From Podarcis pityusensis (Eukaryota): a stretch of DNA of 64,000 nt. Below the pieces are notes generated by a model. It ran no database searches and was not told the DNA's origin. It saw only the letters and a list, made by a program, of their open reading frames with translations. Position 1 is the stretch's first letter, and each line of letters begins with the position of its first letter. This document shows positions 7,956 to 60,995 of this stretch, piece by piece. The stretch lies in the NCBI GenBank assembly GCA_964106645.2, contig OZ067040.1, one strand, 5' to 3'. Position numbers and translations under genes: made by a program.

Positions 7956-8914
7956 GTGCTTACAGACTTCCCTGTAACTGCAGCGACACGTCTCTGTCTA
8001 GAATGATCACCTTGGGGAACTGTCTCTCATTTACTTTATGAGATTATTCCTGTCATCTTTATTAGGGGAAGTGGTGAATCTCCTGTGTTAATTACATTTG
8101 GGTGCCCCCAGGGGCCTGGCTTCAGCGGGGACGGCTTTCTAAGGAATGTAGGAAGTTTAGAATTCACTCCATCCTTCATCAAAATCCTCCATCCTTCTGA
8201 TCAGTTATCTTGCCGATTCTTGAACGCATTCGATCATCTTGTTAATTAATACCTCTACAGTGTGATATTCCACTGTCCCCCAGGACTGGGAAAGACCCTT
8301 TAGCTCACCTGTATGCTAGATGAGTTTGATCCAAGGCATGACAAGCTTCACCAAGCTGTGCTTCAGCTTACACAAGTTGAGGGATATGCCTCTTGCCTCC
8401 ATGTCAGAGCTCCTGGTCTTCACCCACAGTGTGACTGGCAGAAATCCAAAATGTGGAACGAGCTGAAGAAGAAGAAGAAGCAAGATTCATCTACCTTCAA
8501 AACTTTTGTTTCAATTGTCATTACTATTTTTTAGTGCAAGAGATATTTGGCTTGTTGGTTGTATATTCAAAAATACATAATAAAAATCAAGATGTTTAAC
8601 ATTTTATAGATGATGTTTATTACTTTGAGTTATAATGAATTAAAAACTAAGACTAGTGTCAGTCACAAAATGGCCACTGAGTACGACTGGACAAGTTACT
8701 GTAGTTATATGTAGTTCCTGTATTTACATGAAAACCAATAAAAATTATTGGGCAGGGGTGGGGACAAAATGGCCACTGTGAGGTGTGTGGTGTAGCACAC
8801 AGTGTGTGCCATGGCGGGGTGTGTGTGGCATAGTACAAAATGAGAGAGAAGAGAGACATCACTACTTGCCCCCATGCTTACCTCATGCTTAGTGGCCAAC
8901 TGCATTCTGTCTTG

Positions 8915-14147: not shown

Positions 14148-15175
14148 GAATCATAGAGTTGGAAGAGACCACAAGGGCCATCGAGTCCAACCCCCTGCCA
14201 AGCAGGAAACACCATCAGAGCACTCCTGACATATGGTTGTCAAGCCTCTGCTTAAAGACCTCCAAAGAAGGAGACTCCACCACACTCCTTGGCAGCAAAT
14301 TCCACTGTCAAACAGCTCTTACTGTCAGGAAGTTCTTCCTAATGTTTAGGTGGAATCTTCTTTCTTGTAGTTTGGATCCATTGCTCCGTGTCCGCTTCTC
14401 TGGAGCAGCAGAAAACAACCTTTCTCCCTCCTCTATGTGACATCCTTTTATATATTTGAACATGGCTATCATATCACCCCTTAACCTCCTCTTCTCCAGG
14501 CTAAACATGCCCAGCTCCCTTAGCCGTTCCTCATAAGGCATCGTTTCCAGGCCTTGACCATTTTGGTTGCCCTCCTCTGGACACGTTCCAGTTTGTCAGT
14601 GTCCTTCTTGAACTGTGGTGCCCAGAACTGGACACAGTACTCCAGGTGAGGTCTGACCAGAGCAGAATACAGTGGCACTATTACTTCCCTTGATCTAAAT
14701 GCTATACTCCTATTGATGAGGCCCAGAATTGCATTGGCTTTTTTAGCTGCCGCGTCACACTGTTGGCTCATGTCAAGTTTGTGGTCAACCAAGACTCCTA
14801 GATCCTTTTCACATGTACTGCTCTCAAGCCAGGTGTCACCCATCTTGTATTTGGGCCTCTCATTTTTTTTGCCCAAGTGCAATACTTTACATTTCTCCCT
14901 GTTGAAATTCATCTTGTTTGTTTTGGCCCAGTTCTCTAATCTGTCAAGGTCGTTTTGAAGTGTGATCCTGTCCTCTGGGGTGTTAGCCACCCCTCCCAGT
15001 TTGGTGTCATCTGCAAATTTGATCAGGATGCCCTTGAGTCCATCATCCAAGTCGCTGATAAAGATGTTGAATAAGACCGGGCCCAAGACAGAACCTTGTG
15101 GCACCCCACTAGTCACTCTTCTCCAGGATGAAGAGGAACCATTGATGAGCACCCTTTGGGTTCGGTCAGTCAGCC
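14144..15175 (-). mobile_element. CR1 LINE 3' portion (RT C-terminus and 3' UTR), nested in BovB
   Basis: ORF2 motifs [65 protein letters not shown]; ATTCTATG terminal repeat; one apparent frameshift near 14550. Confidence 0.95.
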
Positions 15176-15576
15176 GAAGGCTGATCAATGAAGAATTGAT
15201 GCTTTTGAATTATGGTGTTGGAGGAGACTCTTGAGAGTCCCATGGACTGCAAGAAGATCAAACGTATCCATTCTTAAGGAAATCAGCCCTGAGTGCTCAC
15301 TGGAAGGACAGATCCTGAAGCTGAGGCTCCAATACTTTGGCCACCTCATGAGAAGAGAAGACTCCCTGGAAAAGACCCTGATGCTGGGAAAGATGGAGGG
15401 CACAAGGAGAAGGGGACGACAGAGGACGAGATGGTTGGACAGTGTTCTCGAAGCTACCAACATGAGTCTGACCAAACTGCAGGAGGCAGTGGAAGACAGG
15501 AGTGCCTGGCGTGCTCTGGTCCATGGGGTCATGAAGAGTCGGACACAACTAAACGACTAAACAACAACAACAACAA
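15176..15576 (+). mobile_element. BovB (RTE) LINE 3' end
   Basis: RVPWTARRSN..LKLRLQYFGHLMRR..GRQRTRWLD..WRALVHGVMKSRTQLND* followed by (CAA)n tail; candidate TSD AGCTGAATG at 14027-14035 and 15576-15584. Confidence 0.95.
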
Positions 15577-15784: not shown

Positions 15785-15972
15785 GGGGCCATAGCTCCAT
15801 GGCAGAGCATCTGCCTTGCAAGCAGAAGGTCCAAAGTTCAATCCTGGGCATCTCCAGGTAGGGCTGAGAGACTCCTGCCTGAAAGCTTGAAAAGCTGCTG
15901 TCAGTCAGTACAGACAACACTAGCCTTGAGGCACCAGTGGTCTGACTCTGCATAAGCCAACTTCCTATGTTT
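15785..15972 (+). mobile_element. tRNA-derived squamate SINE
   Basis: tRNA-like head ggggccatagctccatggcagagcatctg...gttcaatcc, then LINE-like tail ending cttcctatgtt. Confidence 0.75.
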
Positions 15973-16559: not shown

Positions 16560-17450
16560 AACACGCCCCCCGCGCTATCCTCTAATTTCACCCGCTGATA
16601 CCCGGGGGGGGGGGTGGCTGGCTGAAGCTGGCAAGTCCTCACACACCTTGCAAAGCCAGCCTGGGAAACAGAAGCCTCTGTAAGAACTCGAGGGAGGGAG
16701 CGAGGGAAGTACCGGGCTGAGCTCCGTCCTGGGAAAGCAGCGCGGGGGGCCCTTTGGCCCGGCGCTCTCCTCCGTCTCCGTTTCCCTGCGGATCTCGCGT
16801 GCGCGCCCGGGGAGGGGAGGAGATGGCCAGAGGCTTCCCATCAGCCGCAGATCACGCCAGGCGGACTCCGCACGCAACGGGGAGGTGACACACGCCGAGG
16901 GTAGGAAACTTCTCCAGCCTCCGGGGGCAGAGGAGGGCTTTCCCCTACCTCCAGCTCCGCGAGAAGCTTGGGGGGCTGCTTTTTTGCACGGCACTTGCGA
17001 GCTCCACTTTCCTCGCGGGGCCCGGAGGGAGCAAGAAGAGGAGACGGCTCGCCAGGTCTCTCGTCGAGGAAGCAAGAGAGTTGCCTGGGCTTCCCCTCGT
17101 CGCAAGGCGCTGCTCCTCCCGAAGCAGCCCGAGGCGGAGCTGGTGGGCGGCAGCGGCAAGCGCGGCCGGGATCGGGGGCCGAGGCTGGCGCTGATTGGCC
17201 GGCGCGAAGGACCTGCTGCCCAGAGCCGAGGAGCGACCGGGATCTTTTCGAAACCGCTCGCTCGTCCTCCCCCAAGAAGGGGCTGCTGTGTGCGTGCGGA
17301 GCTCGAGTCTTGGCCGGAGGCAGGATGAGCCAGAGAGATGTGGCAGAAGCTTTGGTGAACAGGTGAGTCCCCGATCCTGCGAACATTCAATTCCCCCCAC
17401 CCTATCCCGTCCTTTTTAATATGGGGTGGCTTGTGCGAGGAAACGGCCAG
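16560..17450 (+). promoter_or_regulatory. CYP1B1: CYP1B1 CpG-island promoter with XRE cluster
   Basis: CpG-rich; TNGCGTG-type XREs at 16795-16801, 16853-16859 and 16871-16877; GCGTG cores at 16562, 16891 and 17292; GC box GGGCGG 17145-17150; inverted CCAAT (ATTGG) 17194-17198; splice donor AG|GTGAGT at 17362/17363. Confidence 0.85.
17325..17362 (+). CDS. CYP1B1: CYP1B1 exon 1, probable coding part (MSQRDVAEALVN + phase-2 AG)
   Basis: ATG with A at -3; 38 nt to a consensus donor; splices in frame (AG+C = Ser) to exon 2, which has no ATG before the membrane anchor. Confidence 0.65.
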
Positions 17451-19167: not shown

Positions 19168-20781
19168 ACTTACAACAAAACAAATAGTGAACTGGGTAAC
19201 TGCTATGTGTTTAGCATCAGGATATACAACTGCAACCTGAAGGTTAGCTTGTAATCTTAAGTTTCCACACAAGTTCCAGTGAAATCAGTGGACTTTGTTT
19301 CAAGTAAGGATGTGATGCTCTGCACTTACTTGAGAGTATAGTACATCCTATTGAAACTAGTGAGACCAAAAGCTAAGTATCATTTTGAAAAGCTGCAATC
19401 CCTTTTTTATTTGGGCAAGCAATTAATGGTCAGGAGAAGAGGGTTGTTGTAATGTACCAGTACGAAAGCAATTCATTGCTCTGCTTGAATTCAGTCTAAC
19501 TTATTGTGCAGAACACCTTACTTTTGAAGTGATGTGATGGATGCTGTTTAAGTATTGCAAGTTTTCTTACTTCACTGCTAGGTTCCTGCCTGAAACAGTG
19601 CATAGATATGCACAAATATGATGAATTCCCACATAACATTTCAAAGTGCAAATTTTCATGGAGTGTTCATGCCTTTTTTCTGGCAGGACTCTGGGAAGCT
19701 TTCCAAAAGCACAAACCAAAGATGAAGTTTAGAGCAGGGTGGATGGAAATTGATGGTCTTTATTTTTAAAATATGTTTTTAAAATTTGTAATTTTAAGGA
19801 AACTGGTTCTTTTATTTGTTTACTCTTTGTTTACTCTTTAGCGATATTACATATCATATTTTAAAAAAACACAACTTGGTTTAAACTAAAGCCTGTACTT
19901 AATGCAAGCATGCATTCAACGATCCCCTCACATACACTGAATTAAAGCCTGCTTTTCCAACATGGAGGAAAAAACCATGGAAATCATGAATGTGTTATTA
20001 TACTTGATTATGAACGTTTCTGATTCTGCAATAAACTTCCCAACTTATGCAAAAACAAGTTCCCCCAGAAATTACCACACTTGCTTTTGAAAAGTACTAG
20101 ATGCTTACAGCTAAAGCTTACTCAAAATTCACTCCAAAAACAGCATTTTTGCAATATACACTTAGAAAAGTGTACACATTCTATACTGGAGTATAGCCCT
20201 TGTTTTCAATATTTGGTTCACAGTGCAACCCTGTACCTTTTTATTTGGACTTAAATCTCCTTGTTTCCTGGGGTTTACTCCTTAGCAAGTGCGTTTAAGG
20301 GCACGATCAACATTAGAGTTAAGAGCCTTGATAGCAAAAAGGCTTTATGAGTTACAAACCAATACACTTGTTACAGCAGCCAATTAACATACACTTCCGT
20401 TGAGAAAACACAGAGACGGTTTAAGTCAGTGTATTTACTCTTCAGACACACACGCACATGCTGCCTAAAATTAACCTGCCCGGGCTCCTAGTATTATTAC
20501 CGAGTATGTAGGGCAGGCTGCGAATGCTGGATGCCGAGTGTCTATAGCAGGCTTGCAAGTTTGAGGGCCCTCAATTTGGTGGGTGGGGATCCCTTTCCAC
20601 ACAAAGGAAACTGCACGTGCTGGAAGTTTTGGTACATAACAGTTTTTCCCTCTTTTTCAATGGCGCCGCATTTAAAACTGCACCTGCGGCCTGACGCGCG
20701 GATGGCGGGGGCGCTTCCCAGCCGCAGGCTCTGCTGCCCGTCTCTGTCTCTGCTTGTAACCCTCCGCCCTTCTCTCCGCAG

Positions 20782-21777
20782 CGTGCGCCCCCGCGCCTTG
20801 GAAGAGGTGCTCCCGGCCGGCGTGCCCCCGGTGCAGGGCTTGCTGCTGCTGCTGCTCTCGCTGCTGGCCGCCTTCCACGCGGCCAGGCTCCTGCTGCAAG
20901 AGCGGCGGCGGCGGCGGAGGCTGGAGCCGCCGGGCCCCTTCCCGTGGCCGCTGCTGGGCAACGCGGCTCAGCTGGGCAGCGCCCCTCACCTGGCCTTCGG
21001 GCGCCTGGCGGCCACCTACGGCCACGTCTTCCAGCTGCGCCTGGGCGGCTGGCCCGTGGTGGTGCTGAGCGGCGAGCGCGCCATCCGCGAGGCGCTCATC
21101 CGCCAGGGGGCCGCCTTCGCGGGCCGCCCGCCTTTCCCCTCCTTCCAGCTGGTGTCGGGCGGGCGCAGCTTGGCCTTCGGCGGCTACTCGGAGCTGTGGA
21201 AGCTGCAGCGGCGCCTGGCGCACTCGACGGTGCGCGCTTTCTCGGCGCGCCGCCTGCTGGAGCGGCCCCTGGTGGCCGAGGCGCGCGCCGTGGTGCGGCT
21301 GCTGGTGCGCGCCTGCGCCGGCGGCGCCTTCGTCGACCCGTCGAGGAGCCTGGTGGTGGCCGTGGCCAACGTCATGAGCGCGCTGTGCTTCGGGCGCCGC
21401 TACAGCCACGCCGACGCCGAGTTCCGGCGCCTGGTGGGCCGCAACGAGCAGTTCGGGCGCACGGTGGGCGCCGGCAGCTTGGTGGACGTGCTGCCCTGGC
21501 TGCAGCGCTTCCCCAACCCGGTGCGCTCCGCTTTCCGCGCCTTCCGCTCCCTCAACCACGAGTTCTACAGCTTCGTGCGCCAAAAGTTCGTGCAGCACCA
21601 GAGCAGCCTCCGCCCGGGCGCCGCCCTCCGCGACCTCATGGACGCCTTCCTCCGCCTCCAGCAGGCGCAGCCCGCGCTGCCCTTGGAGCACGTGCCCGCC
21701 ACCGTCACCGACATCTTCGGCGCCAGCCAGGACACGCTCTCGACCGCCCTGCAGTGGCTCTTGATCTTCCTCATCAG
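20782..21777 (+). CDS. CYP1B1: Cytochrome P450 1B1, exon 2
   Basis: Polypyrimidine tract + CAG acceptor ending 20781; hydrophobic anchor, basic stretch, [49 protein letters not shown]-helix [10 protein letters not shown]; donor AG|GTGAGC at 21777/21778; very GC-rich. Confidence 0.97.
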
Positions 21778-22078
21778 GTGAGCTGCTGGGCCGCGGGGTG
21801 GGGTGGGGGCCTCGGAGGAGACCGAGGCAAAAGCGCCACTTGACCCTCGGAGAAGCTCAGGTGGCGGAACTGGGGAAGGTCCGGACCCGAAGAGGAGCTG
21901 ATCTCCGCCGAGAGGCGGTGAGAAAGCATTGTTTTCAACCCGAGGGCCACATTCCCCACTGGGCAATCTTCCGAGGGCCGCATGAGCGGGTAGAGAGGGA
22001 TGAGGCTAAAATGGGGGCAGAGCAAGGAATGGGAATTCTAACTTCGTACATTGTTAGGCCAGTTTCTACATACACTTG

Positions 22079-24018: not shown

Positions 24019-24625
24019 GTACCCAGAGGTACAGGCTAAGCTGCAAGAAGAGATCGATAAAGTTGTCGGCAGGGACCGCTTGCCTTCTGCTGAGGACCAG
24101 CCCCACTTGCCTTACGTCATGGCCTTCCTTTACGAATCCATGCGTTTCAGCAGCTTTGTGCCAGTTACCATTCCCCACTCCACTGTGGCTGACACCACCT
24201 TAATGGGCTACCGCATCCCCAAAGACACCGTGGTCTTTGTCAACCAGTGGTCAGTAAATCACGACCCGGTGAAATGGCCTTCCCCAGAGGAGTTTAACCC
24301 ATTGAGATTCCTGGATGAGAATGGATTCCTTAACAAAGATCTCACCAGCAGTGTGATGATTTTTTCACTGGGCAAACGTCGGTGCATTGGGGAAGAGTTA
24401 TCTAAAGTGCAGCTCTTCCTCTTTATTGCCATATTCCTACACCAGTGCAATTTCAGTGCTAATCCAAAGGAAGACACGAAAATGGATTTCACCTATGGCT
24501 TGACTATTAAACCCAAGCCGTTTGAACTCAACGTCACACTTCGAGATAACATGGATTTGCTGGATAGCACCGTACAGAGACTTCAGGCAGAAAAGGATTC
24601 TGAAAATTGCCTCCCAGATATGTAA
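24019..24625 (+). CDS. CYP1B1: Cytochrome P450 1B1, exon 3 coding part
   Basis: Acceptor CCAG ending 24018; (R)[22 protein letters not shown], ExxR (ESMR), FNPLRFLD, heme motif [10 protein letters not shown]; stop TAA ending 24625; total spliced CDS 1641 nt = 546 aa. Confidence 0.97.
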
Positions 24626-26019
24626 ACGTTGAAGTTTGAACACTGTTTGTAGTCCTCTTATAAGGATCATTTGCCTTTGCCTTTTTATATTTAAATGAAA
24701 CGCGTTTAAATATAATGTATTCTGGAGAGGTAGTAGCATGAAAATGAAGTAAAACAATGCATTATTTTTCAAATGTGGATTTGGTTTTAACCATTGGTAT
24801 TTCATTACCTCTGCATTTCTTGCCAGGCAGAAGCAAAAAGGGCATTCTCCAAAGTTGTTTTAAAAAATCTGAAGTTCTTTTCACAGTAGTGTTTAGTTTG
24901 GGATTGCCATGCTTCGTTTACTCATTTTTTTATGGAGCATCCACATGATGGTGCCATCCAATCATTGTCATCCCATCCTATATTTTCCTGCAGTTCTTCA
25001 GTCTTTTCTCAGACCGCAGGAAGTCTGACTTTGCAGAAGAAGACCTCTAGACCAGTGGAGATTGTGCTGCTCTTCCGTCACTTTAGAAAGGGCAGGATTT
25101 TGACACGACCAGTTTGACGTATGATGCAGTTGAATCAACACAGCACAATTCACTACTGTTGCAGGCACCATTTTATCATACTGCTTACACAGTCTTTTTA
25201 ATTAGCACATTTTAAATGCTTTACAAGGGTTTATGTCTATTGTTATTGTTTTTATTACATTGGTGAAATACCACTTCAGTGAAAGTGTGCAAGCACTATG
25301 ATGCCAAAATTTAAAATATGATGGGGTGAAGTCCCTTTCTATCCCCAGCTATCTGGGCAACAATTTTTTTTATCCCTTTTAAATAAAAAATAAAAAATGG
25401 TGCTTTACCATCTGATACAGCTACTACCTATACTGCCCAAGGTACAAGTTGGGATTGTAGCTGTGAATGACAATTGTATTTCAGTGCCTTGGTTATAAAA
25501 TATCTCTCCATTGAAATTCCAGATGTTTTTGTCTGAAGAGATTTTAAATATAAGCACAATTTCATTCTCAAATATTATTGACATTTTCTAAAGTAATCAG
25601 GCACTCATTGTGCATTGCATCTGTTATAACAAATCTTGATTGAGGCAGTGATGTTAAAAGATGTTGAATAAATCGTCTGCTTACCTCAGACAATCACACA
25701 TAGGGATGTAAGGCAATGTTTTAAAGTAATATTTGGAAAATAATTGCATTTGACAACCTAGGTTTTATTGGTTGAGTGCTCTCATTGATATACATTCATA
25801 AATAGGGATGCTATTAATTTGGATAAATGCATATATATAAATAATATGGAAAGTGCTAATTAAGGTTGGTTCTGCATTTTAAAACAATTTGAATAAAAAA
25901 CTGGAAGCACTAATGAATGCTGTTGAAGCCAAAAGGCTTCTTAATTAGTGTGTTTCCTTCCAGGATTGGACTTTGTTAAATCAGTTCTGGGCTTCTCACT
26001 CTAATTGAATGAAGTTCTG

Positions 26020-26148
26020 CTATGAGGGGTGGGGGACATGAGGTTTCCCAGTTGCTCTTGGGTTCCCAACTTCCACCATCCATGATGGGCTGGGTCTGAT
26101 GGGGAGTCCCAAACATCTGGGAGACCACAGGTTCCCCACCCAAGCTCT
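26020..26148. mobile_element. Decayed ACTACA/TCCCA-type palindromic MITE
   Basis: tcccaacttccaccatcc...ctgatggggagtcccaaacatctgggagaccacaggttccccacc; related decayed copies near 28060-28160, 29733-29875 and 40515-40642. Confidence 0.55.
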
Positions 26149-27027
26149 GCACCAATGAGTGACAAAAGGACTGAGGACCTCATCCATCTTCCATTTAAAA
26201 TAAATAGAATTGCAGTTGCCTTCAATATAAATAGAGTTAATTCCTAATCTAGGGTTGTGGCAGTTTGCCCCCCATCCCCGCCTCTTATATCCCCACTTAG
26301 GCTTTGAACTTGAATTGCTTTGAATAGGAAAACCTGTTTGGTCATTACCCTTCAAAATTGGGAGTTAAAGGTGTTGCAAACCAGACCTGAGTTCACTGGT
26401 CTCAATTTGTGTAGGCTCCTTTTTGAAATGTGATGCTCAGCGTACCGATGACATTCAAATGAGGGTGTGGGTCATCATGATCCCAATCCCCCACTATTAA
26501 AACCATATCTGCATAGGGATGCAATGGCTCATGAAATAATATTATGTTTTCCCCTCCATAGCTAAGGTCCTGTAAGCTTATGTCAATCATGTTAATTACT
26601 TGGGTGTCTCACCATCCAGCTGTCAGGAGCTAGACCAGGGACTAAATGGGTGGCTTTAATCTGAAAACAGAAGGAAAATCTGTAGTTGTGTTGCTTTTCT
26701 GGCAGTGCTTCCGAAACTTCTGATCCAAGCCCTGCTGAAACATTCACCTTTACCTCTGAAGCAATAGATATGCAAGTGAAAATGTGTTTTACTTGATTTG
26801 CAATGCGTTACTGAACTCTGTAGCCGAATGATAACAATAGTGCCTACCAATATTTTGTCATTAAACTCAACAAGATCTGTCTACAAGATCTTGTACATTA
26901 TCTAGTGGTCTTCCATCTCGTCACCGTTTTAGAGAACATAAAGCAGAAATTTAAAAACAGAGTTAAGATCGATAGAAGGGTAGTATGCTTAGATACTTTG
27001 TAGATTATAAAAATATAATTTGGTATT

Positions 27028-27052
27028 GCAGAACTTAGCCTGCATCTGTGAA
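27028..27052 (+). promoter_or_regulatory. miR-27b-3p recognition element with extensive 3' pairing
   Basis: GCAGAACTTAGCC-TGCAT-CTGTGAA vs the reverse complement of miR-27b-3p (GCAGAACTTAGCC-A-CTGTGAA). Confidence 0.9.
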
Positions 27053-27486
27053 AAGCTCTGTACTACATGAAACATTTTCGTGCTCAGGTCTACATTAGAT
27101 CTGTCATTTAGGATAGTACTATTTCCCTCCAATGCTATGTCTGTAAATATGATTCATCTGTATATTATAGGCAGTGTAAATGCTCCTAACATAATAGTTC
27201 CCAATAACTCAAGAATCATTGAGTTTATTTTAATACATGCTGATTGTAATTTTGTATTTTATTTTATTTTTCATAAAAGCTTTAAAATATATCAGGCTGG
27301 TAGTAATTACATTTTGATTACGTAATGATTTTTAAATTCCGGTTTACCAGATTGACTGTATTTTTACATTCAGTTTGTTTGACAACAAGTATCAGACCTG
27401 GGTTGTTCTTGTTGTTTTAGGATAGATTACTATTTTAATGAAAGAGTAAAGAAAACTTTCTTTTCACACAACCACACAACCAATCA

Positions 27487-27502
27487 AATAAATTAAAATA
27501 AA
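27487..27502 (+). terminator. Probable distal poly(A) signals of CYP1B1
   Basis: Tandem AATAAA at 27487-27492 and 27497-27502, about 440 nt after the miR-27b site. Confidence 0.5.
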
Positions 27503-28259
27503 ACAACTAGTGTCACATACTGTGAATCAATTTCTGATGTACTATATGAAAGTCTAATTGCAATTTCTTTCTTAGGATACGTGAATCCAAGCTTAAACTA
27601 AAGAGTCTCTCTAAAGAGATCACTGTAAGAGTGGAGGGTCTTAAGTATTCAAATTGATGAAGGGGGGGGGAGGCATTAAATTTTCCTTAAACGTGTCTTC
27701 CTTTATTTCTCCCCTGGCAAGCCTACACTGCTGCATAAGCTTGCCCAGTTCCAAATTCTATCACACCATCTCTTCAGAGCAAACTCCAGCTCACTGTTGC
27801 TATAACATGCAGTTTAAACTGTGAGGAGATAAGATGACATCCTCTTGTTACACCCCTCTTGTTATTTCAACAGGGACAGTTTGCCACCCCCTCACAGGAA
27901 TGTATTAATCCTAACATCATCCTCAACGGAGAAGTAGAAAGCTCTTATAAACATGATGAAGACAAAACACCCAGTTATATACTGCAGCTACTTTGTAGTT
28001 GCAGAGATTTACTTCCTTACATGGGTCTGGTGTTTTGCTTGCTATGTTGGCCCATGGTTTAGGATGGGTAGCCAATGTGTTGTGGACTACAGTTCCCATC
28101 TTCCATTATGATTGGTCATGCTGACTGAGGCTGATGGGACTTGTCCAAAAATCCTGGGGAAAGCCCCTTTGGCTGTCTCTGTTCTATGAGGTTTCCTAGA
28201 CTGAGAATCTAGCTTCCAAGGATAGAAAACTAAGCTTGTCTTCTGTACCCCACTTGAGT

Positions 28260-58073: not shown

Positions 58074-59495
58074 GTAAATTGAATCCACTTACTCTGAAGC
58101 AAATCCAGCAAAGAGAGGGCAGAATAAGGAGTCTTGGCAAATATGTTTCTAGAGCTGTCACAAGCCACTCTCGCTACTCAAATATTAGCACTTATTTGAT
58201 AAATAATTGCACAGAAACAACAATATAATGTATCTAGGCAAATACTACATTATTAGCTTGGTTATGACACAATTATAAGCATGCACAGAAACTTTGTTAT
58301 CTAAATTGAGGCTGTCTTTTTTGTGTTCCATTGAAATTAAGAGCTACTTCACAATCTCTTCTCCCAGAGGTTATTATTAAGTGGGTCTGCTTTGTTATGA
58401 TTTTTTGGGGTTTGTTTTGCTATGTTTCATTACCTTTTCCCTTCTTACTAAAGTTGTACTGATCAATGGAAACTGCCTTGGTGTGACAAGGTGGGAAGGC
58501 ACAGCTTATGCCTTCTATTAAATACATAATACATAGTACATAGTACATCAACATGCACCTACAACACCAGATATGACAGTCTGGTGGATATTTTTCTGAG
58601 TGAAATTTCTGGCACAGGCACACTGCTGTAGATTTAAATTTTATAGTGAATTGGAATTAACTAAACCATTTCCAGGCAACGTCAGCACTGGAAAGTGATA
58701 CAGGAGCGATCCAGTATTAGATATTATCGACAGAAGTGCCAACACAAAAGCAGAAGGGATAATGTTTCACCAAAGGAATTGTATTTTCCATTGTTAACAA
58801 CTCTTAAGATGGGAGGAGACCAAGAAGTGCAAGTTCTACTCAGCTGCAATGCTAAAGGTTTCTGGAGTTGAAGCAAACCAAGGAGCGCAACTAGTGCGTA
58901 ATATTTGAAAACAATCATACAAAAGCCAAACTGAGGGCGAGTTTGCAAGAGCAAAGGCAATACATCCCTTTGCCATAGGCTTTCCTAAAATATACTGATA
59001 TTTGAAAGGTTTTGGGCTACTTCATGCAATGCAAGCTGGCTGGATTTCTTGGTTGCTCTGAGTTGCCTTGGGCAAGATAAAGCAACTAACAAATGTAATA
59101 AATAATAATAGTACTAATAAAATGTTGAGAATGCAGCTTACCTGCCACTGATTTCCAATATTGCTTCCCCCCTGCCTTGGGGTGGGCAGCTAGCTCAGGT
59201 TTAAAACCAAACACTTCCCACCACAGCTTCACCTGAAACGACTGAGCCTCAGACTCGTACCCCACTCCCATTTTCCTTCAGCAATGCCACAGAGATCAGA
59301 AACATTTGTTTCTGTTTCCAATGGCAAATTGCCATTATAACTGAACCAGGAGCTGCTGTTTGGATAACTACAGGTAAAGCTAACAAGCCATGATCTAGAG
59401 AGTGGATTTGCAAATTACTTACACTCAAAATAGTGATATATATATATATATATTTAGAGGGTTGGATAGACCTGAAATAATTCATAAATACCTAC

Positions 59496-59950
59496 CCGCC
59501 TTCACTTTCTGCTTCTTCAGAACTGTTGGTATCTGACACACCTTTGCCAATCTCAGTCTTCCTCTTCTTTGTTCCTCTGTGCAAAGGGCTGCTCCTGCGA
59601 GAATCTGTTCTCCCCTGGAGTTCATCCCGGACAAGTTCTTCCAACTTTGGAATTGCTTCTCTCAGAAATGTTACTTCTCTCTTAAGTTCTTCCACAGTTG
59701 CTATTAAACCATTCATTTTTTCCAGTACCTGAAGCTGCCTTCCTTGCAATAGCATCACAGTTCCTTGTTCATTATGAGTTTCATGTGGAAAATTTACCAA
59801 GTCAAAACTGCCCTCTGAATTCAAAAAGGGAGGCAAGTACATGACTTTACTGCATTTCTGTGTCTTTCGATACCAAATGAGGCCCAAGGTTATTCCAGCA
59901 GCCCCTGCCATTAGGCCAAATAATATTTTTTTGCTTTCGGAATAAGGCAT
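59496..59950 (-). CDS. RMDN2: RMDN2 (regulator of microtubule dynamics 2, FAM82A1) first coding exon
   Basis: Acceptor catttcag, exon starts at 59962; MPYSESKKILFGLMAGAAGITLGLIWY N-terminal TM; coiled coil QLQVLEKMNGL..EELKRE; ends SSEEAESEG(G)|GTAGGT; total CDS 1257 nt = 418 aa. Confidence 0.95.
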
Positions 59951-60995
59951 GATTTTTCTCTTCTGAAATGATATAAAAGCCATAAGAAAACTGGGTTTAC
60001 AACGTTGCATGTGAAATTCCTGGCTACTGCAATGTAGGCTATAGAGAGATGACAGCTTCATTTACAAACCAGTTATACAGGGATTCTTGGTTAAGAGGCA
60101 CTTAGGTCACAACCCAGAACATGCTTGCATAGAAATAAATGTGGGACAGCTTCATATGACAATTGCATAATGGGGCTGTTTTGCATTCTAAGCAATGTTT
60201 GTATTGTTCGAAACCAATCCGGGTTTTGAAGAACAATCCATTTGAACTTTGCCCTTATTGTTGCATGGTACTACCAAGCAAAAACTCAGCATATCTTTAG
60301 TATTTGTTTTGCATCATCCTCATCAGTTTCATCATCACTCCTGATCCACTCCCAAGCTAGCAATTATTTTAGTTCCATATTAAAGACATGTGCCATTCCG
60401 GTTGGCTTTCAGAGTTCAGCTAGCAAATAGACAAGAAAATCAATAGTATAATTGGTGAGCACCAGGCAACATGATTAAGTGCACTTGATTTTGCTCAGAA
60501 GTGTGGCTCGCGTTTCTATTGTCTTTTAATACCTGCATTCTCTGCCCTGAGCCTTTGGGATGCAGTCTGCTACAAAACTAATATATAATTGAAAAGTCAG
60601 AGGGAACCCAAGGCTCAGCATGCCTGAGAAAAACACGACAACTGAACAGTCCCGCCTTCTACATGCCAATTTTGTTGGAAACCGATGAGATCTACTTCCA
60701 ATAAACTCTGGTTTTTATTTGGGAGAGTCACAGAGGCAGCTGGCATTGGAGAAACTGGGCAACTGTGAAGGCTGACCTCTGTAACTAGATAGCAGTTGCG
60801 CAGTTTCAGCAAACTCTGGAAGTAAATGATTGTCGATGAGGAGTGAAATGATAACAGCTCATGGGGATACTTGCACGCACAGCACCCATTTAAACCACAC
60901 ACAAATCCTGAGAACTGTAGTTTCTAAAGGGTGCTGGGGACTGTAGCTCTGGGATAGGAAAACTAAAGTTCCCAGAATTTGGGGGGCGGCGGCGT

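Follow-up and report, generated by a model that had tools for sequence, protein, structure and literature searches.

The 3' UTR of CYP1B1 is a described target of miR-27b. Repression of the human gene through this region was reported on the basis of reporter and antisense data (Tsuchiya 2006, PMID 16982751, cited here as summarized in PMC6320947), and repression through the goose CYP1B1 3' UTR was reported from a comparison of wild-type and mutant luciferase constructs (PMC9984896), in which the mutated site may or may not be the exact element considered here. As the repressive element has been known since 2006, the existence of a copy in a lizard is no surprise.

Pairing of the 3' part of a miRNA has been analyzed quantitatively for a positive-offset binding mode, in which bridging target bases let the pairing reach nt 10–11 (McGeary et al. 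2022, PMC8940178). For let-7a, 3' pairing to nt 10–11 has its optimum at an offset of +4 nt and brings an affinity gain of about 380-fold, and repression tracks affinity (PMC8940178). Endogenous triggers of ZSWIM8-dependent TDMD have also been described, namely Cyrano/miR-7, Nrep/miR-29b, Lrrc58/miR-503, and Atp6v1g1 and Lpar4/miR-335. ZSWIM8 reads the emptied PAZ pocket and the path of the duplex and responds to changes in the length of the loop (PMC13083262), and validated triggers are usually 8mer-seeded (PMC10899785). TDMD is compatible with either binding mode (PMC8940178), and Cyrano pairs from G11 with an offset of +2. Predictions of the TDMDfinder type validate about half the time, even with over-expression.

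Here, a computational analysis is reported for a miR-27 site in the CYP1B1 3' UTR of the lizard Podarcis pityusensis, for which an earlier, sequence-only reading had proposed that the AhR-induced CYP1B1 mRNA acts as an inducible degrader of miR-27b. The analysis points to an old and tightly binding repressive site.

CYP1B1 Locus and Its 3' UTR

The window, that is, the whole stretch of DNA analyzed, comprises 64,000 nt of P. pityusensis (GCA_964106645.2, contig OZ067040.1). The gene model was handled exon by exon; the host gene was identified as CYP1B1 by Pfam p450 matches in both coding exons, and the product of exon 2 has its best match, at 98% identity, in CYP1B1 of Podarcis muralis. On the plus strand, the first coding exon (exon 2) occupies 20660..21777 and is followed by a donor GT at 21778, and the coding part of the last exon occupies 24019..24625, with the stop codon at 24623–24625. 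The 3' UTR of about 2.9 kb was assigned to 24626..27520 (+), its end being placed by poly(A) signals and loss of read coverage. Two AATAAA signals lie on the same strand at 27487–27492 and 27497–27502, and the miR-27 site, at 27028–27052, lies approximately 435 nt upstream of them. In stranded RNA-seq data of low depth from a lizard relative a few percent diverged, plus-strand coverage of the UTR was near-continuous to about 27478, with a depth of 10 (one run) at the bin containing 27028–27052, and fell to zero over 27479–28034, adjoining the AATAAA signals at 27487 and 27497. Because the reads span the bin of the site and stop beside the poly(A) signals, the site lies within the transcript; a transcript end before 27028, the eventuality raised in the sequence-only reading, is ruled out by coverage to about 27478.

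Several further features of the locus were recorded. A perfect miR-27 8mer at 27519–27526 lies about 20 nt beyond the second poly(A) signal, at or past the likely cleavage site, and in the wood mouse, too, a seed match occurs about as far from the poly(A) signal; rather than serving as a miRNA site, this 8mer probably represents a GU-rich downstream element. Additional AU-rich UTR blocks at 27216–27305, 24680–24787, and 25456–25521 are conserved in squamates only (snake and/or gecko). RMDN2-type synteny around CYP1B1 is common to the lizard and the bowfin: a coding exon at 59492–60061 (−), which has no Pfam match, was read as RMDN2 by its position, and in the bowfin locus an RMD1-3 gene is convergent with CYP1B1. 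Elsewhere in the window, a retrotransposon reverse transcriptase-like fragment, CR1-like by eye, is located at 14520–15188 (−), and a weak tRNA-like Rfam match at 15785–15856 (+) is probably the head of a SINE.

The AhR premise of the earlier proposal is plausible for this locus. A cluster of AhR response elements (XREs) at 16795..16877, with three consensus elements at 16795, 16853, and 16871, lies in an upstream GC-rich island, and its downstream pair, with 18-nt spacing, aligns together with the adjacent sequence in the lizard, gecko, snake, turtle, quail, and wood mouse. The XRE at 16871 is invariant in these six amniotes, and this lizard has a single-base difference in the one at 16853. 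The cluster is most likely the CYP1B1 dioxin enhancer, and since the pair is conserved, inducibility of CYP1B1 in the lizard is plausible by homology.

Structure of the miR-27 Site

The 25 nt at 27028–27052 (+) read exactly as given in the sequence-only reading, and the start of the site, placed there 2.4 kb past the stop, is 2403 nt downstream of the CYP1B1 stop codon. The proposed pairing was likewise reproduced: nt 1–7 of miR-27b-3p are paired, a 5-nt loop lies opposite nt 8, and 13 Watson–Crick pairs follow at nt 9–21. The 3'-pairing block, complementary to miR-27b-3p nt 21–9, occupies 27028..27040 (+), of which 27031–27040, pairing with nt 18–9, is the part invariant from bowfin to mouse. 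The target loop, 5 nt opposite miRNA nt 8 with an offset of +4, occupies 27041..27045, and the seed match, a 7mer-A1 (nt 2–7 plus an A opposite nt 1), occupies 27046..27052. The miR-27 sequences used were those of the sequence-only reading rather than those of the lizard genome itself, and the first 15 nt of miR-27b-3p agree with a goose qPCR primer (PMC9984896).

The lizard duplex has a calculated energy of −29.8 kcal/mol with miR-27b versus −25.1 kcal/mol with miR-27a, and the other 45 miR-27 seed matches in the window have a mean of −14.5 ± 3.2 kcal/mol. A chance match is ruled out by an expectation of about 7e-7 per whole window for a 13-mer and a 7mer-A1 separated by a loop of 1–15 nt. 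The second-best seed duplex in the window, at 8776 (−26 kcal/mol), was treated as chance because it adjoins a G-run, is located a long way upstream of the gene, and lacks a 3' block. No Rfam family was found at the site; a remnant of a mir-27 hairpin or another structured RNA is ruled out by this blank and by the lack of a shared local fold, and a conserved special accessibility by seed-open ranks of 0.07–0.75.

The preference for miR-27b over miR-27a, also noted from the sequence alone, amounts to 2.3–4.7 kcal/mol in amniotes, where the nt-19 pair would tilt the site toward miR-27b, and to 0.4 kcal/mol in the bowfin. In the latter, Watson–Crick pairs are present at nt 9–18 only and a U faces nt 19, so that the site hardly separates miR-27a from miR-27b; it may fit another miR-27 paralogue of fish.

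Conservation in Vertebrates

Eight species were compared, namely this lizard, leopard gecko, gopher snake, pond turtle, quail, saltwater crocodile, wood mouse, and bowfin, a set without amphibian, teleost, shark, lamprey, or marsupial loci; the mouse contigs L006–L009 end before the UTR and did not enter the comparison, and the orthology of the bowfin CYP1B1 protein was checked on a tree. The site is present in all eight, 1.3–3.0 kb downstream of the stop codon in the seven fetched loci, and was located at L010:15318 in the wood mouse, L004:12871 in the quail, L005:13863-13887 in the saltwater crocodile, and L011:15057-15081 in the bowfin. The same element thus occurs in the CYP1B1 UTRs of a mammal (wood mouse) and a bird (quail), and this continuous conservation in bird and rodent identifies the lizard site as the orthologue of the known human element, with the human sequence itself standing outside the comparison.

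The ten bases pairing with nt 9–18 are identical in 8/8 species, with zero parsimony changes on the tree, against 2.2 changes per column in the loop and 2.4–2.7 in the flanks, the flank counts being somewhat inflated by ungapped anchoring; the expectation that the block would be more conserved than its surroundings is thus borne out. Every 8- to 11-mer that the eight UTRs share lies in the block, and apart from the block and the seed, no run of 5 nt or more is invariant in an amniote alignment of 820 nt. Toward the miRNA's 3' end, a Watson–Crick pair is present at nt 19 in seven of the eight species and at nt 20 in six, with G:U in the other two, and at nt 21 in only two, this lizard and the snake. 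When G:U is counted, nt 9–20 are paired in all seven amniotes. The claim that 13 pairs were kept across the mammal–reptile split is not sustained, since the number is 12 (nt 9–20) in the wood mouse, turtle, quail, and crocodile. Of the selection on the miRNA 3' end that had been suggested, strong selection on the block stands, but it is anchored at nt 9–18 and weakens toward the end.

The loop is 5 nt long (offset +4) in every species. Its first base, at 27041 in the window, is U in 8/8, and the other four vary; the invariant U forms no standard pair with miRNA U8, and possibly reflects a U·U stack or the avoidance of pairing at nt 8. The edges of the loop are never A in the eight species, although an A there would pair with nt 8 with a gain of approximately 2.5 kcal/mol, a pattern that is only suggestive of avoidance of A at these positions. 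In the seed, a single change was found, a G:U at nt 7 in the crocodile, and the bowfin lacks the A opposite nt 1 (6mer). The crocodile site, with its intact 3' block and G:U seed, represents a natural 3'-compensatory version.

The absence of changes in the block, together with the k-mers shared by all eight UTRs, shows that selection on the block is real and that it predates the split of ray-finned and lobe-finned fish. Judged from these eight species, the element is older than the sequence-only reading claimed and was already present in the last ancestor shared by bowfin and amniotes, if not earlier, roughly 430 million years ago. It is this age that is new here; no report of the bowfin-to-mouse age or of the fixed +4 offset was found in the literature searched.

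miR-27b Levels after ZSWIM8 Loss

Fibroblasts in general express CYP1B1 well without induction. Published ZSWIM8 tables, which cover uninduced mouse and human samples only, were re-analyzed. In the ZSWIM8-knockout human lines HFF-1, BJ, and IMR90, the log2 fold changes of miR-27b-3p were 0.01, −0.14, and −0.15, respectively, none of them significant (PMC13041716 Table S1). In the same fibroblasts, miR-7 rose by 1.2–2.9 log2, and miR-29b-3p, which is more abundant than miR-27b, rose by 0.27–0.96 log2 (PMC13041716 Table S1), significantly in BJ (0.96) and IMR90 (0.40), so that high abundance alone does not mask TDMD. TCDD-treated MEFs were the source of the first purified Cyp1b1 protein, and in heart its presence is constitutive (PMC7672255).

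In 12 Zswim8-null E18.5 mouse tissues, the mean change of miR-27b-3p was −0.17 log2, corresponding to −0.12 when set against miR-23b-3p and −0.01 when set against miR-27b-5p (PMC10620050 Table S1). Stomach was an outlier, at +0.74 versus the 5p strand but −0.55 versus miR-23b, and miR-335-3p averaged +3.1 over the 12 tissues (PMC10620050 Table S1). Furthermore, miR-27 is absent from the list of ZSWIM8-sensitive miRNAs compiled from the 12 tissues, MEFs, and induced neurons (PMC10620050). The accumulation of miR-27b-3p relative to its passenger strand and cluster partners that a degrader would entail was thus seen in none of the uninduced mouse and human tables. The published knockout data give no sign of miR-27b destruction, and the site most likely just holds CYP1B1 down.

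Proposed Binding Mode and Alternative Explanations

Based on the conservation pattern and the published binding data, the element is likely to be an ancient high-affinity repressive miR-27 site that employs positive-offset 3' pairing. In this scheme, AGO-miR-27 would first bind the modest seed (nt 2–7), and the 5-nt loop would accommodate the unpaired nt 8 and four extra target bases (offset +4). The target could then pair with the G-rich center G9-G10-C11 and onward through nt 18–20, and the outcome would be slow release and strong repression of the CYP1B1 mRNA or protein. The bulge could prevent slicing, and the central pairing and long offset would leave little recruitment of ZSWIM8. The site would probably serve as a post-transcriptional brake on an AhR-inducible enzyme that metabolizes pro-carcinogens and steroids. 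In agreement with this scheme, miR-27b carries G9-G10-C11 at the position matching that of let-7a, the 3' pairing includes nt 11 at an offset above +1 (nt 9–18 paired at +4 in all eight species), and the weak seed degenerates in the crocodile and bowfin but the block does not. Against it, the +4 optimum was measured with other miRNAs rather than miR-27, and Cyrano, Nrep, and Lrrc58, which are deeply conserved in vertebrates with similar 3' pairing, are triggers. The argument that ordinary repression needs only the seed proves too simple, because a non-degradative use of 3' pairing at an offset of +4 is known, in which a weak seed combined with such pairing raises affinity and repression. In the lizard, operation of the positive-offset mode and repression of CYP1B1 via miR-27b may be expected by analogy with the systems in which they were measured.

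A conditional trigger is an unlikely alternative, in which the site would repress CYP1B1 and also degrade miR-27b via ZSWIM8 when CYP1B1 mRNA is very abundant, as under an AhR agonist or in adrenal, gonad, uterus, and eye cell types, so that a mutual-antagonism switch would result, in line with the circuit suggested in the sequence-only reading. Such a trigger, doubtful to the same degree, would be silent in uninduced ZSWIM8 screens, and its geometry, found throughout bony vertebrates, would be unusual in that pairing starts from nt 9 at an offset of +4. If true, the CYP1B1 mRNA would be the first miR-27 trigger of endogenous origin and the host counterpart mimicked by HSUR1 and m169, and the level of an abundant miRNA of metabolism and immunity would fall under pollutants and dietary AhR ligands via the mRNA of an enzyme. 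The proposed trigger geometry is borne out as to energy and length: 12–13 consecutive 3' pairs and a 5-nt bulge correspond to high-confidence predictions of the TDMDfinder type, the MFE ratio exceeds 0.8 by approximate calculation, the seed is accompanied by at least six contiguous 3' pairs of strong energy, and this pairing is evolutionarily conserved except for the terminal nt-21 pair, spanning nt 9–20 in the amniotes as described above. The pairing energy at nt 11–21 is −11.5 to −15.8 kcal/mol in amniotes, within the range of −9.6 to −17.1 kcal/mol of validated triggers, which came from a different folding program. In addition, the site by which m169 degrades miR-27a is a 7mer-A1, conservation extends to the XRE enhancer, and CYP1B1 and miR-27b levels are reported to be inverse in breast tumors and renal progenitors, where the authors read the causality the other way.

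The geometry departs from that of typical triggers, on the other hand, at the center of the duplex, where complementarity covers nt 9–10 in 8/8 species and nt 8 alone stays open; validated triggers usually leave nt 9–10 unpaired and start 3' pairing at nt 12–13 (PMC10899785), a central loop that is typical of triggers, not universal, and altered loop length lowers ZSWIM8 binding (PMC13083262). miR-27b is unchanged in the three knockout fibroblast lines, and the running text of a ZSWIM8-knockdown screen in eight breast lines, including MCF-7, names no miR-27. TCDD alters few liver miRNAs, and in fetal thymus miR-27a dropped along with miR-23a and miR-23b, a joint fall that points to a cluster-level effect. 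In the literature searched, no link of CYP1B1 to TDMD or ZSWIM8, no CLASH chimeras of CYP1B1 and miR-27b, no experiment relating deletion of the site or induction of the transcript to miR-27b level, and no ZSWIM8 experiment under AhR induction were found, and neither Cyp1b1 nor miR-27b has an entry in the LaVigne supplements. Support is lacking for the move from conservation to TDMD, because selection weakens toward the miRNA end, a non-degradative use of such pairing is known, and miR-27b-3p shows no sensitivity to ZSWIM8 in the published tables analyzed. The inducible-degrader idea is weakened rather than refuted, since the ZSWIM8 data come from uninduced samples and stop short of the AhR-induced state.

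The pairing at nt 9–20 spans the scissile position of AGO2 (nt 10–11), and miR-27b might cut the mRNA as miR-196 does HOXB8; nt 10 and 11 lie inside a helix of 10–13 bp in all eight species, and AGO2 is able to cut seed-mismatched, otherwise paired sites. Contiguous pairing from the seed through nt 10–11 is nevertheless interrupted by the 5-nt loop at nt 8 in every species, and no read-end pile-up was seen at the site in the low-depth RNA-seq data. Because the slicing signature for position-9 pairing appears at offset 0 only and is lost at +1 or −1, and the CYP1B1 offset is +4, slicing is very improbable and is presumably absent from this site. Even less credible is the notion that the conservation serves a function other than miR-27 binding, for instance as a motif for a protein, as a fold of the RNA, or as an element of the DNA, with miR-27 complementarity being incidental. 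The first loop U, invariant without miRNA pairing, and the roughly constant location of the site 400–620 nt upstream of the poly(A) signal in most species would fit such a function, but the invariant bases are almost exactly those complementary to miR-27, divided by a variable loop, and neither a shared local fold nor an Rfam family accompanies them. Tight repression by positive-offset 3' pairing thus remains the preferred explanation.

Comparison with Known Systems

The human and goose CYP1B1 element resembles that of the lizard in gene, miRNA, and orthologous distal 3' UTR position, and differs from the lizard and snake copies, which have a 13th pair (nt 21). Under the repressive reading, let-7/lin-41 and lsy-6/cog-1 share with the CYP1B1 site a weak seed, nt-11 pairing, bridging bases, and repression as the output (PMC8940178). 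In contrast to these worm sites, the CYP1B1 site has a canonical seed (7mer-A1) in most species and is therefore supplementary rather than strictly compensatory; its offset is +4 instead of +1 or +2, and its pairing could reach nt 9. In the solved TDMD complexes, pairing starts from nt 12 or later with an offset of 0 or −1 (PMC8940178).

The viral RNAs HSUR1 and MCMV m169 resemble the CYP1B1 site in binding the miR-27 family through a weak seed, either a 6mer or a 7mer-A1, but differ in being very abundant viral RNAs, and m169 forms only 6 3' pairs. With the CYP1B1 site, the endogenous triggers have in common a seed, an internal loop, extended 3' pairing that is conserved, and a position within a UTR. 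Unlike it, they mostly possess 8mer seeds and unpaired nt 9–10, and their cognate miRNAs rise on ZSWIM8 loss, which miR-27b does not. The CYP1B1 site is thus a counter-example for TDMD prediction, combining trigger-grade 3' pairing with a miRNA unmoved by ZSWIM8 loss, and for this reason it offers a ready substrate for asking what divides a trigger from a tight repressive site.
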